64,000 bases of DNA from Bacillus subtilis subsp. subtilis str. 168. GTDB taxonomy: Bacteria > Bacillota > Bacilli > Bacillales > Bacillaceae. Positions 34,979 through 38,879 of the stretch are shown piece by piece. Every line of letters starts with the position of its first letter. The stretch's first letter is position 1. The notes below the pieces were generated by a model. That model did not search any database and was not told the origin of the DNA. It saw only the letters and a program-made list of their open reading frames with translations. The DNA is taken from contig NC_000964.3 of the NCBI RefSeq assembly GCF_000009045.1, positions 2,480,001 to 2,544,000 on the forward strand. Reading direction: 5' to 3'. A program made the position numbers and the translations under genes.

Positions 34979-35599
34979 CTACTGATCATAATAAGAATCA
35001 ATGCCATTGACAATCGCATCTGCGGCCTTTTGCTGGTATTCTTCACTTCCCAGCTTGTCCGCGTCAGAGCTGTTCGTGATAAACCCAAGCTCCGCCAACA
35101 CACTTGGCATTTGTGAATATGTAATGACGTAAAAGTCTGATTCTTTCACGCCCCTGTCTCTCGTTTGTAAGGAAGAAACGAGCTGTGACTGAATATCGGA
35201 TGCCAGACGCCGGCTGTTCTCCCCTTCATAATCAGATTGAAAATACGTTTCTGTTCCTGAAGCTGAAGCAACCCCTGAATTCACATGAATGCTGACAAAA
35301 AGGTCAGCCTGATTGGCACTTGCCTTAGCCACTCTTTCCTCCAAGGTCAGAAAATGATCGTCAGACCGGGATGCAACAGGATTGGCTCCCTCCTCTTTTA
35401 GTTTGTCTGTCACATGCTCTGAGACAGCCAAATTAATATCCTTTTCAAAGAGCCCGTTTCCGACCGCTCCACTGTCTTCACCGCCGTGTCCGGCATCAAT
35501 ATACACTGTTTTCCCTTCTATCGGCTCTGCTGCCTGTGCACAAGGCGCGAGCGTCAAAGCCAATCCGCACAGCGCCAAGCTCCTCCATAACATTCTCAA
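34979..35599 (-). CDS. yqiI: Secreted N-acetylmuramoyl-L-alanine amidase (206 aa, TTG start)
   Basis: Signal peptide; IDAGHGG, SIHVN and ELGF Amidase_3 motifs; SD ggagggag. Confidence 0.92.
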   Translation of the reverse strand: MRMLWRSLALCGLALTLAPCAQAAEPIEGKTVYIDAGHGGEDSGAVGNGLFEKDINLAVSEHVTDKLKEEGANPVASRSDDHFLTLEERVAKASANQADLFVSIHVNSGVASASGTETYFQSDYEGENSRRLASDIQSQLVSSLQTRDRGVKESDFYVITYSQMPSVLAELGFITNSSDADKLGSEEYQQKAADAIVNGIDSYYDQ

Positions 35600-35613
35600 C
35601 TTACTCCCTCCGG

Positions 35614-35907
35614 TCACGAGTTCTTTCGCAGCTGAATATCTTCCAGCTGTAAAGTTCCATTATCCTTCTTTGTATATTTCACCAGGACATGTGTCTGATC
35701 TGGCAGTGATTCACATTCATCACGTTTATCCTTCGGAACTTGTATCATGGTTTCTTCTCCATTAAGAGAAACCGCAATCGTATGAGGATCAGCCGAGCCA
35801 ATGTATTTTCCCTCTTCGGTAAACCTCGGCACTGAGTCATCCGCACTTGCAACACTGCACCCCGAAAGAAAGAGCGCAGTAAACAGCAAAAGAACCGTTT
35901 GTTTCAC
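35614..35907 (-). CDS. yqiH: Small lipoprotein (97 aa, GTG start)
   Basis: Lipobox LSGC; SD gaggtgg before GTG 35907. Confidence 0.88.
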   Translation of the reverse strand: MKQTVLLLFTALFLSGCSVASADDSVPRFTEEGKYIGSADPHTIAVSLNGEETMIQVPKDKRDECESLPDQTHVLVKYTKKDNGTLQLEDIQLRKNS

Positions 35908-35937
35908 ATGACCACCTCTTCCTGATGTTTGGCTTTT

Positions 35938-35966
35938 ATCTTTGACCAGAATGGAGAATTTGTAAA
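35938..35966 (-). promoter_or_regulatory. Putative SigA promoter of yqiHIK
   Basis: TTTACA-17-AAAGAT on the minus strand. Confidence 0.45.
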
Positions 35967-36165
35967 GACAACGCGAATGCAGGCGAGCAAGTTCCATGAT
36001 TTTCAAAAGGGCTATACGACCCGATCATTTCCTGTTGTTAGAAAGATAACGAGCAGATTTGTCTATGAGGATGGCTCTAATTGAGGCGCCAATTAGAAAA
36101 AATTAGCGGAAAGAAGCAACTTTTTATTCATTTTAAAAAATTTGAGAATAGGGTGAGCAAATCGT

Positions 36166-36194
36166 TTGACGGGTGGGTCAGCCAAGCGTAACCT
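36166..36194 (+). promoter_or_regulatory. Putative SigA promoter of the 44-aa small ORF
   Basis: TTGACG-17-TAACCT preceded by an AT-rich tract. Confidence 0.5.
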
Positions 36195-36232
36195 TTTAAA
36201 GGATATTTACTTTATTGAAAGAAGTTAAAGCC

Positions 36233-36367
36233 ATGAAAAAATTCGTTCTGCTGCTGGCGGCAGCTGTCATCACATGCTCCATCGGCCACCAAATCAGTGG
36301 CGGCTACAAAGGCCCCGAAAAAGAGCGGCCAAAACATCACTCTGCACTCAAGATATTCAGTCGGTAA
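36233..36367 (+). CDS. Candidate 44-aa exported peptide (MKKFVLLLAAAVITCSIGHQISGGYKGPEKERPKHHSALKIFSR)
   Basis: Hand-translated; signal-peptide-like N-terminus; weak SD gaaagaag; upstream promoter. Confidence 0.5.
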   Translation: MKKFVLLLAAAVITCSIGHQISGGYKGPEKERPKHHSALKIFSR

Positions 36368-36377
36368 AGCAGATCAA

Positions 36378-36407
36378 TTGCATTAATTTTTACATATAGG
36401 CTAGAAT
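36378..36407 (+). promoter_or_regulatory. Putative SigA promoter of yqiG
   Basis: TTGCAT-18-TAGAAT, with AGCA at 36368-36371. Confidence 0.5.
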
Positions 36408-36439
36408 ATGTGCGAATCCAAACGAAAGAAGATGATCAA

Positions 36440-37558
36440 ATGAATCCTAAGTATAAGCCACTTTTTGAACCATTTACGTTTAAAAGCGGCGTTACAATCA
36501 ACAACCGGATCGCAGTAGCACCGATGACTCATTACGCTTCTAATGAAGACGGTACAATATCTGAAGCGGAGCTCGACTACATCATCCCCCGTTCAAAAGA
36601 GATGGGAATGGTGATTACAGCCTGCGCAAATGTTACACCGGACGGAAAAGCATTCCCCGGGCAGCCGGCCATCCATGACGATTCCAACATTCCAGGTTTA
36701 AAAAAGTTAGCACAAGCCATTCAGGCACAAGGCGCTAAAGCTGTTGTACAAATTCATCACGGCGGTATTGAGTGCCCGTCTGAGCTCGTTCCTCAACAGG
36801 ATGTTGTGGGGCCAAGTGACGTGTTTGATAACGGCAAACAAATTGCTCGCGCATTAACAGAAGAAGAAGTGGAAAACATTGTGAAGGCGTTTGGAGAAGC
36901 GACAAGACGCGCCATTGAAGCCGGCTTTGACGGTGTCGAAATTCACGGTGCAAACGGCTACTTAATTCAGCAGTTTTATTCTCCGAAAACCAACCAGCGC
37001 ACGGATCGCTGGGGAGGAAGCGATGAAAAACGATTAGCCTTCCCGCTCGCTATTGTCGATGAAGTGAAAAAAGCCGCTTCAGAACATGCGAAGGGTGCAT
37101 TCTTAGTCGGCTACCGCCTGTCTCCGGAAGAACCTGAGACACCGGGATTGACAATGACTGAAACTTATACGCTTGTTGATGCTTTAGGGGATAAAGAATT
37201 GGATTATCTTCATATCTCACTGATGGACGTGAACTCAAAAGCGCGCCGCGGTGCAGATCCGACTCGCACACGCATGGACTTATTGAATGAACGTGTCGGA
37301 AACAAAGTGCCGCTGATCGCCGTCGGTTCCATCCATTCCGCTGATGACGCGCTTGCCGTCATCGAAAACGGTATTCCACTGGTCGCTATGGGACGCGAAA
37401 TTCTAGTTGACCCTAACTGGACGGTAAAAGTAAAAGAAGGCCGTGAAAAGCAAATCGAAACAGTGATCAAAGGCACAGATAAAGAAAAATATCATTTGCC
37501 TGAACCGCTATGGCAAGCAATTGTGAACACACAAGGCTGGGTGCCTTATAAAGATTAA
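36440..37558 (+). CDS. yqiG: Old-yellow-enzyme-family NADH:flavin oxidoreductase (372 aa)
   Basis: NRIAVAPMT, EIHGANGYLIQQF, NQRTDRWGG. Confidence 0.92.
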   Translation: MNPKYKPLFEPFTFKSGVTINNRIAVAPMTHYASNEDGTISEAELDYIIPRSKEMGMVITACANVTPDGKAFPGQPAIHDDSNIPGLKKLAQAIQAQGAKAVVQIHHGGIECPSELVPQQDVVGPSDVFDNGKQIARALTEEEVENIVKAFGEATRRAIEAGFDGVEIHGANGYLIQQFYSPKTNQRTDRWGGSDEKRLAFPLAIVDEVKKAASEHAKGAFLVGYRLSPEEPETPGLTMTETYTLVDALGDKELDYLHISLMDVNSKARRGADPTRTRMDLLNERVGNKVPLIAVGSIHSADDALAVIENGIPLVAMGREILVDPNWTVKVKEGREKQIETVIKGTDKEKYHLPEPLWQAIVNTQGWVPYKD

Positions 37559-37564
37559 TGTGCA

Positions 37565-37597
37565 AAGACTGCCGAAACGATTCGGCAGTCTTTTTTC
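37565..37597 (+). terminator. Terminator after yqiG, probably bidirectional
   Basis: aagactgccgaa/ttcggcagtctt stem followed by tttt. Confidence 0.85.
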
Positions 37598-37600
37598 CCT

Positions 37601-37714
37601 TTATATAAATAGTTTGTGTACACATCTAAACAGCAAAAGAAAGAGCTCCCCACCAACTTCGAAAAGAAAATCCAGGAAAAACCCCTCACGCTTTCTTGCT
37701 TTTTTCTTTTTCAT
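37601..37714 (-). CDS. Candidate 37-aa small protein (MKKKKARKREGFFLDFLFEVGGELFLLLFRCVHKLFI)
   Basis: Hand-translated; strong SD AAAAAGGAGA 7 nt upstream; stop TAA abuts the yqiG terminator. Confidence 0.6.
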   Translation of the reverse strand: MKKKKARKREGFFLDFLFEVGGELFLLLFRCVHKLFI

Positions 37715-37871
37715 TCGTACGTCTCCTTTTTACATGAATACGCCTTACTTACGATTTTGCAGGAGAAAGGTTTCATTTTATAACGGACACATCTAGGGTC
37801 GATCATGCTTCGTGATCCTATAAGATGTATGAATGGACCAAGAGTGCAGGTAATACCGCCATTTGCTTTCC

Positions 37872-37943
37872 TTACTTTTCAAACCTATCCTTTACTATAT
37901 GCGGATACTTAATATTCTTCTCCCATACTACAAATGTCCCCAA
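37872..37943 (-). CDS. Candidate 23-aa peptide (MGTFVVWEKNIKYPHIVKDRFEK, TTG start)
   Basis: Hand-translated; perfect SD AGGAGG 9 nt upstream of TTG; 80 nt downstream of the spo0A stop. Confidence 0.35.
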   Translation of the reverse strand: MGTFVVWEKNIKYPHIVKDRFEK

Positions 37944-38022
37944 AACAAAACGCCTCCTATTTATCAGCGCAAACTAATAAATAAAAGACGTTTGATTTAA
38001 TGACCACTTAATAAGCTCATGT

Positions 38023-38826
38023 TTAAGAAGCCTTATGCTCTAACCTCAGCTTATCCGCAACCATTGCAATGAATTCACTGTTGGTAGGTTTAGCTTTTGT
38101 CATGCTGACAGTATAACCAAACAACGAGGAAATGGAATCAATGTTTCCTCTGCTCCATGCCACTTCAATTGCATGGCGGATCGCTCTTTCTACACGGCTT
38201 GCGGTTGTGTTAAATTTTTTGGCGATGTCCGGATAGAGGACTTTTGTAATGCTGCCGAGCAATTCGATGTCATTGTATACCATTGAGATTGCTTCGCGCA
38301 GATAGAGATAGCCTTTAATATGGGCTGGGACGCCGATTTCATGGATAATGCTTGTGATGCTCGCGTCGAGATTTTTCTTCTTTGGTTCAGGCTGGCTGCT
38401 GCGTATAATACTGCTTTGCGATGATGGCGCACGATGCGTCACACTGCTGGCATTTCCGCTGACCTGGCGGATATGGCCGACAAGGTTTTCCATATCAAAC
38501 GGTTTGAGAATAAAGTAGGACGCGCCTAAATCGACGGCCTTTTTCGTGACATCTTCCTGCCCAAAGGCTGTCAGCATAATGACATTCGGCTGTTTTTTCA
38601 GATCTGATTCCCTCAGCCTCTCTAAAACCGCAAGTCCGTCTAGATGCGGCATAATAATATCTAATACGAGCACATCGGGATCTTTTTCTTTAAACAGCGA
38701 CAGGCATTCCTGTCCGTTATAAGCAACGCCGATCACTTCCATGTCTTCCTGTCCTTCTATATATTCACTTAACAGGCTTACCAGCTCTCGATTATCATCA
38801 GCAACACAAACTTTAATTTTCTCCAC
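38023..38826 (-). CDS. spo0A: Sporulation master response regulator (267 aa, GTG start)
   Basis: Receiver domain [10 protein letters not shown]; [21 protein letters not shown]-binding domain. Confidence 0.98.
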
Positions 38827-38879
38827 GTTTCTTCCTCCCCAAATGTAGTTAACAGGATTCACCCTTGCTACATGTTTAC

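Follow-up and report, generated by a model that had tools for sequence, protein, structure and literature searches.

The small open reading frame (sORF) between yqiH and yqiG of Bacillus subtilis 168 is, judged from its conservation among relatives, a real micro-protein gene. The idea that it encodes a Phr-like signal is not supported. It is a conserved gene in the reference Gram-positive B. subtilis 168 for which there is no Pfam or NCBIfam entry, and for which the literature search found no paper. Selection on the frame and a family in five genera, with an unusually conserved expression cassette, add a testable micro-protein to the small-protein inventory. The analysis would also correct the start codon (ATG 36233, and not the TTG of the 50-amino-acid models) and the notion of an orphan Phr signal beside spo0A. 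The control region of yqiG and yqiHIK holds a coding gene, and this is relevant when promoters there are deleted.

The gene and its neighbourhood

The window is the whole 64,000-nucleotide stretch that was analysed (NC_000964.3, positions 2,480,001 to 2,544,000 of the forward strand), and coordinates are positions in it unless another locus is named. The following features are referred to below:

35614-35907, minus strand: yqiH, a 97-amino-acid lipoprotein-like ORF; no match in Pfam
36166-36171, plus strand: -35-like hexamer TTGACG, read in the sequence; the TTGAnn position is conserved in the family loci
36189-36194, plus strand: -10-like hexamer TAACCT, three of six positions as in the consensus, 17-nt spacer from the -35
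36215-36217, plus strand: TTG start of the 50-amino-acid pipeline models, probably not the real start
36217-36224, plus strand: ribosome-binding motif GAAAGAAG, 8 nt before the ATG and conserved across loci
36233-36367, plus strand: sORF coding sequence, 44 codons and TAA, identified by translation, dN/dS, codon periodicity and relatives
36368-36407, plus strand: yqiG promoter (AGCA at 36368-36371, TTGCAT at 36378-36383, TAGAAT at 36402-36407), directly after the sORF stop
36440-37558, plus strand: yqiG, Oxidored_FMN (Pfam)
38023-38862, minus strand: Spo0A (Pfam)

Translation of positions 36233-36364 gives 44 residues (P0001), and the stop codon TAA follows at 36365-36367. These are exactly the 44 residues of the peptide quoted in the original prediction, so the ORF described there stands. 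The neighbours that it named (yqiH, yqiI, yqiG and spo0A) were all recovered from the ORF list and Pfam; yqiI (Amidase_3) and yqiK (GDPD) lie past yqiH. Spo0A, placed at about 1.7 kb, is 1.66 kb away when measured from the sORF stop. The sORF is present in single copy, and no paralogues were found in the B. subtilis 168 genome (4,215,606-bp chromosome). An Rfam scan of positions 35000-38000 gave no matches.

The ORF listing contains 80 ORFs of at least 30 amino acids within 7 kb around the locus. The length of the sORF alone is thus not beyond chance, and the case for a gene depends on conservation. Public annotation pipelines label the product 'hypothetical protein'. Searches of Pfam and NCBIfam with the 44-amino-acid peptide returned no family match at E values up to 10. 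Pfam gave only stray sub-threshold matches for 13 family members, and a profile search of the PDB with the family gave chance-level matches only (E >1). In the literature search, the core peptide strings and the BSU2420x locus tags occurred in no paper found, and no B. subtilis small-protein census was found that includes the sORF.

Selection on the reading frame

The frame is present in 17 of 49 Bacillus species genomes, as found by DNA search in relatives and protein search of the genus; 13 copies are intact and four are damaged. The intact copies belong to two clades, one subtilis-like with 44 codons and the other amyloliquefaciens-like with 45 codons. Between these clades the sORFs are about 70% identical, at the DNA and the protein level alike, and there are no indels inside the frame. 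Pairwise dN/dS is 0.05-0.23 (Nei-Gojobori). In the Bacillus alignment, the variable sites are distributed 20/11/37 over codon positions 1, 2 and 3, and the codon for Ser22 alternates between AGT/AGC and TCA among species. Six subtilis-clade species served as a control: the sORF has 7/5/19 variable sites per phase, whereas two equal-sized upstream intergenic blocks have 19/17/17 and 11/13/12, with no periodicity.

This pattern of substitution indicates that the frame is under purifying selection and that the gene is real. The original prediction claimed a genuine small gene with its own promoter, and proposed ORF conservation and dN/dS across Bacillus as a check. Frame conservation, the low dN/dS and the conserved promoter support it. 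Of the damaged copies in the four species, one has lost its start and contains a TGA inside the frame, one lacks 2 nt close to the start, one is deleted at the N-terminus and one is frameshifted at the C-terminus. Frameshifted copies also occur in rare B. subtilis strains. The sORF is therefore selected, yet dispensable in some lineages.

A family in five genera of Bacillales

By homology, the sORF of B. subtilis belongs to a family of Bacillales that has no name and occurs in five genera. A profile of the Bacillus sequences gave 15 matches among 1.84 billion representative proteins, including proteins of 40-59 amino acids with the same layout. Genome searches and a scan of GTDB species detected relatives of 38-48 amino acids in Peribacillus (many species), Neobacillus, Metabacillus and Domibacillus. 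Carriers within Bacillus include halotolerans, stercoris, siamensis, nakamurai and velezensis. No relative was found in 24 genomes of the genus coded g19, nor in 32 of the 49 Bacillus genomes searched. The gene had been called an orphan; that label has to be dropped, since the family occurs in five genera and pipelines already annotate the product as a hypothetical protein.

The 32-sequence alignment (A3) has five invariant residues: M1, K2, Q20, G23 and G24. A further eight (L6, I13, S16, G18, H19, Y25, P28 and R32) are at least 90% conserved. The consensus consists of MKK, about 15 hydrophobic residues, the motif S-[IL]-G-H-Q-x-x-G-G-Y-x-D-P-[RE]-K-x-R, and a variable basic end. Position for position, conservation in the hydrophobic segment equals that in the neighbouring motif, and the C-terminus is the most variable region of the family. 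All 30 unique members derived from the loci have a tail with a net charge of +3 to +7; in the strain 168 protein it is +4.

Codon 33 (36329-36331) encodes Pro in strain 168 and related strains, and Arg in most B. subtilis strains and in other Bacillus species. The Pro33 of the 168 type is probably a tolerated change, as Peribacillus members likewise carry Pro there.

Promoter, ribosome-binding site and start codon

Direct reading of positions 36166-36194 confirms the promoter sequence of the original prediction, TTGACG and TAACCT with 17 nt between them. A consensus promoter scan missed it because the -10 hexamer, with three of six positions as in the consensus, falls below the threshold. TTGAnn is found 17 nt before TAnnCT at most loci of Bacillus, Peribacillus, Domibacillus and Metabacillus and at one of the two Neobacillus loci; three loci are without it. 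In relatives, TAnnCT takes the forms TATGCT, TAATCT, TACTCT, TATCCT and TAACCT, all at the same spacing. An A-rich leader of 30-40 nt recurs across genera. Readings of the promoter as SigB, SigW or another ECF type were rejected by eye; only the SigA-type spacing of 17 nt is constant across genera.

The motif GAAAGAAG is identical in 25 of 27 loci of the genome-contig scan and usually lies 8-9 nt upstream of the start. Among loci it is read in differing frames relative to the start, and its conservation is therefore at the RNA level. The predicted weakness of the Shine-Dalgarno (SD) sequence is confirmed by the computed duplex with the 3' end of 16S rRNA, which is only -5.3 kcal/mol, compared with -13.0 for yqiG and -18.9 for yqiH. 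Family members of Bacillus start with ATG, those of most other genera with TTG. Folding of the leader RNA found no structure beyond that of shuffled controls (z = 0.09). The conserved SigA-like promoter, the fixed imperfect SD and the frequent TTG start point to deliberately low expression, and the layout of the family suggests a gene suited to this.

The octamer GAAAGAAG also precedes yqiG (36424-36431), with the same 8-nt gap to the ATG. There are 548 copies genome-wide, against about 151 expected from composition, and 53 of them are followed, after 6-11 nt, by a start codon whose frame is open for at least 100 codons.

Many public annotations begin the protein at TTG 36215, which gives 50 amino acids. 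This TTG overlaps the conserved GAAAGAAG and is missing in other species, which read 'acagaaagaag' here. Its absence from those species and the conservation of GAAAGAAG at the RNA level argue against the 50-amino-acid model. The start is probably ATG 36233, for a protein of 44 amino acids.

Evidence of translation

Ribosome profiling had been proposed as a further check, and about one fragment was found at ATG 36233, which is the right place but weak support. The data come from one MNase Ribo-seq run (X24), which was sampled at about 6% and is sparse. Depth in the sORF bins 36203-36232 and 36233-36262 is 1.33 and 1.13, which is consistent with a single fragment, about 37 nt long, whose 5' end lies about 20 nt upstream of the ATG (n of about 1). 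Footprint 5' ends for yqiG lie at 36422 (ATG 36440), and that for yqiH at 35925 (GTG 35907), in both cases 18 nt upstream of the start. The bin at 36173-36202, where a footprint from the TTG start would be expected to originate, has zero depth in this sparse run. RNA runs X21-X23 have no reads on the region and thus provide no test of expression.

Run X24 also contains pile-ups at the starts of yqiH (35895-35925, minus strand) and yqiG (36422-36454, plus strand). There is an internal yqiG peak at 36623-36682 (plus strand), about 185-240 nt into the gene.

Genomic context

The yqiG promoter is conserved in both Bacillus clades. A terminator scan of positions 35500-36900 found no terminator-like site, and hence none between the sORF and yqiG. 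Expression of yqiG is reported to be Spx-dependent and induced by disulfide stress (PMC3479203, PMC3351151). Outside Bacillus, a terminator-like hairpin lies 3' of the gene in several loci. The sORF of the B. subtilis group would have lost its terminator and come to abut the yqiG promoter, and its transcript probably continues into yqiG. The link between the two genes would be positional and not functional.

In the amyloliquefaciens-like clade, the sORF lies about 95 nt upstream of yqiG. Here, a gene for an MntP-family membrane protein, a gene for an HTH_3 and DUF1232 protein, and a 31-codon sORF separate yqiH from the sORF, which is thus not tied to the YqiH/YqiI module. A partnership with the divergent YqiH/YqiI cell-wall module had been suggested. 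It does not agree with these two intervening genes and the additional sORF, with adjacency to yqiG being kept, nor with the loci outside Bacillus, where neither yqiH nor yqiI is a neighbour.

The spacing of yqiH and yqiG in the amyloliquefaciens-like clade reflects about 1.8 kb of extra DNA relative to B. subtilis; the MntP-family and the HTH_3 and DUF1232 proteins are encoded at L013:1804-2439 (minus strand) and L029:534-1208 (plus strand). The second sORF of this clade, at L029:1328-1423 (also in L028 and L030-L032), has 31 codons, a hydrophobic product with a KWKKE-type tail, and a strong AAAGGAGG SD. No homologue of it was found in the B. subtilis 168 genome.

Outside Bacillus, no OYE gene adjoins a family member. 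The neighbours in Peribacillus are gltC, a Coat_F gene and a lipoprotein gene, and in Neobacillus two Coat_F genes. Others outside Bacillus are YebC-like, methyltransferase, yugN, pgi, ssb, GNAT, HlyD-like, HAD and transporter genes. No partner gene is recurrent across all family loci examined, and with neighbours as heterogeneous as these no partner can be named. Coat_F is the sole repeated theme, in two contexts: genes for spore coat protein F-like products lie one to two genes upstream on the same strand in Peribacillus and Neobacillus (L051:2467-2958, L064:3548-3853 and L070:3429-3737). This adjacency may be a link to the spore or a coincidence.

A probably membrane-retained, possibly secreted product

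The balance of probability tips towards a low-abundance, single-pass membrane micro-protein that would be retained by its N-terminal anchor. The N-terminus had been described as resembling an export or membrane-insertion signal, and the MKK followed by a hydrophobic segment agrees with this. AlphaFold2, run with the family alignment, predicts a helix over residues 2-22 (pLDDT 84-92) and a tail of low confidence. MKK and the hydrophobic helix would insert in the membrane and remain there as an anchor. The S-[IL]-G-H-Q-x-x-G-G-Y-x-D-P-[RE]-K stretch beside the membrane, together with the basic tail, would form the working surface; it would bind a membrane-associated partner encoded elsewhere, not next door. 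The protein would thus act in the manner of known small membrane-protein modulators. Since the hydrophobic segment is conserved and the far C-terminus is variable, a retained helix fits better than a disposable signal peptide. The basic tail resembles the cytoplasmic tails of known small membrane proteins.

Some features speak against the anchor. Only 14-15 residues (F4-G18) make up the uncharged core, a length that is typical of cleavable signal peptides and short for spanning a membrane; at S16 and G18 the sequence also obeys the -3/-1 rule of signal peptidase I. As both flanks of the hydrophobic core are positively charged, topology is ambiguous.

The same features could be read as those of a secreted cationic peptide, a serious alternative which we nevertheless regard as unlikely. 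Residues 1-18 would serve as a Sec signal peptide that signal peptidase I removes by cleavage behind S-I-G. This would free a basic peptide, 21-30 residues long (26 in strain 168) and with HQ at its N-terminus, for a role outside the cell as a signal, an antimicrobial or a factor that binds the wall or the membrane. An n-region with MKK, an h-region of 14-15 residues and the near-invariant S (-3) and G (-1) agree with such a precursor, and the nearest protein atlas neighbours are Phr- and PapR-like precursors, with scores (0.75-0.79) at chance level. However, signal peptides do not usually have an h-region conserved at the level of single residues, as this one is, and the h-run is shorter than the 17-19 residues of five genuine Phrs. 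The would-be mature N-terminus is strongly basic (+3 to +7), and a strongly basic mature N-terminus hampers Sec export. At the loci examined there is no linked processing, export or receptor gene. Slightly less likely still is a fuller version of this reading, in which the gene would be a self-contained module whose dosage is limited by the conserved sub-optimal promoter, the fixed imperfect SD and the frequent TTG starts. Its product would be exported and cleaved to an Arg/Lys/Pro-rich His-Gln peptide of 21-30 residues (26 in 168), acting outside the cell without a linked receptor. If this were true, the family would be a new class of Bacillales peptide signal or envelope-binding factor, and not a membrane-retained modulator.

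A mini-lipoprotein had also been proposed. This is not borne out, because most relatives have S, M, V, I or T in place of Cys15. The replacement is found in 18 of 30 unique loci-derived sequences, and also in further relatives in A3. The strain 168 site itself reads V-I-T-C, with T at -1, and thus departs from the lipobox pattern [LVI][ASTVI][GAS]C with an invariant Cys.

Other explanations

It is very unlikely that the sORF is not a gene and that its frame is kept by constraint on the regulatory DNA of the divergent yqiHIK and yqiG control regions. The region does sit between two regulated promoters, the SD is weak and there is very little Ribo-seq signal. In 2012, Fischer and Bremer reportedly described a long-range control acting on the yqiHIK promoter. 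But codon periodicity, low dN/dS, switches between serine codon families and the lack of indels are unexpected of regulatory DNA, and the protein itself recurs in four other genera, where it is encoded at unrelated loci.

There is similarly little to recommend a type I toxin-like membrane peptide, whose translation would be held low by the weak SD and TTG start. The peptide is small and hydrophobic with a basic C-terminus, and its poor initiation signals are conserved. However, the gene is single copy in the genome and its loci are chromosomal, the hydrophobic core is short, and the leader has no significant structure (z = 0.09). Inspection by eye of the downstream side found neither a convergent promoter nor space for an antisense RNA; in Bacillus, the yqiG promoter occupies the 3' flank.

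A rap-less quorum-sensing precursor of the Phr type, from which ERPKH would be released to inhibit a Rap phosphatase or another RRNPP receptor, is highly improbable. The missing defining features have already largely refuted it. In its favour are its length and N-terminal hydrophobic segment, which resemble those of Phr precursors, and its neighbours in the protein atlas (a language-model search), which are Phr-like or PapR-like at the chance-level scores given above; a search of the atlas with the tail alone found nothing. The genome contains 11 rap genes (RapH_N search), and the nearest is about 143 kb from the sORF; the original prediction was thus correct that no rap gene is adjacent. No rap or TPR receptor gene lies beside the family genes in the seven Bacillus loci of the genome scan, where the flanks are known genes. 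In other genera, there is none among the immediate neighbours scanned with Pfam (some of which have no Pfam match) or among recurring neighbour families.

Comparison was made with PhrE, F, G, I and K, read from this genome. The five genuine phr genes overlap or abut their rap gene, with offsets of -44 to +3 from the rap stop codon. Their products have uncharged runs of 17-19 residues, compared with 14-15 in the sORF product, and tail net charges of -1 to 0, compared with +3 to +7 in the sORF family. The family profile scores at most 5.9 bits on them, and only over 'MKKL..'; there is no match to NCBIfam or Pfam. The proposed pentapeptide fares no better. ERPKH occurs only in the 168 lineage (302 contigs), whereas ERRK is the commonest form in B. 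subtilis (791 contigs) and the form in all other Bacillus species; elsewhere in the family this position has ERRK or SRPR. ERPKH as a conserved pentapeptide signal is therefore not supported: it is a variant of the 168 lineage, and most B. subtilis strains have ERRK. What is conserved is GHQxxGGYxDP and not a C-terminal pentapeptide. With no rap gene nearby, a basic tail, a variable C-terminus and no profile match, the peptide does not bear out its description as Phr-like.

Finally, it is also scarcely credible that the sORF encodes a MifM- or SecM-like leader or arrest peptide that regulates yqiG, with membrane insertion relieving a stall at GGYxDPRK. In both Bacillus clades the sORF does lie immediately before yqiG without a terminator, and its product does combine an insertion signal at the N-terminus with a conserved motif, next in the sequence, that contains Pro and Arg. 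But the conserved yqiG promoter lies between the two genes, and outside Bacillus the gene stands alone near unrelated genes, with a terminator-like hairpin at several loci.

Comparison with known systems

MifM (yqzJ) of B. subtilis is an arrest peptide that monitors membrane insertion; its stall unmasks the SD of yidC2 (yqjG). To our knowledge, MifM is always coupled to yidC2 (yqjG). The sORF resembles it in being small, in its N-terminal membrane segment, in its place upstream of another gene and in lying in the same region of the B. subtilis chromosome. In contrast to MifM, it is followed by a gene that is transcribed from a promoter of its own and that is not kept next to it outside Bacillus, and obligate coupling to a regulated downstream gene is not found.

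The similarity to Phr and to PapR/NprX-type RRNPP peptides lies in a length of about 40 amino acids, a basic N-terminus followed by a hydrophobic segment, and small genes. The conserved element of the sORF product is beside the helix and not C-terminal as in Phr, and there is no receptor gene nearby. The type I toxins TxpA, BsrG, BsrE and YonT of B. subtilis are small hydrophobic peptides with basic ends and restrained translation; their genes belong to prophage-like elements and are paired with convergent antisense RNAs, and their membrane spans are longer. A prophage-like setting, a convergent antisense RNA and a longer span were not seen for the sORF.

The membrane-anchored micro-protein proposed here may be compared with the small single-pass modulators MgrB, AcrZ, KdpF and CydX of E. 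coli. These proteins have fewer than 50 amino acids, one N-terminal helix and a short charged tail. Their genes stand alone or are loosely linked and are expressed at low levels, and the proteins bind larger membrane proteins. The sORF product has no sequence relationship to them and a shorter hydrophobic core; it is like them in its size, its single predicted N-terminal helix and its charged tail.
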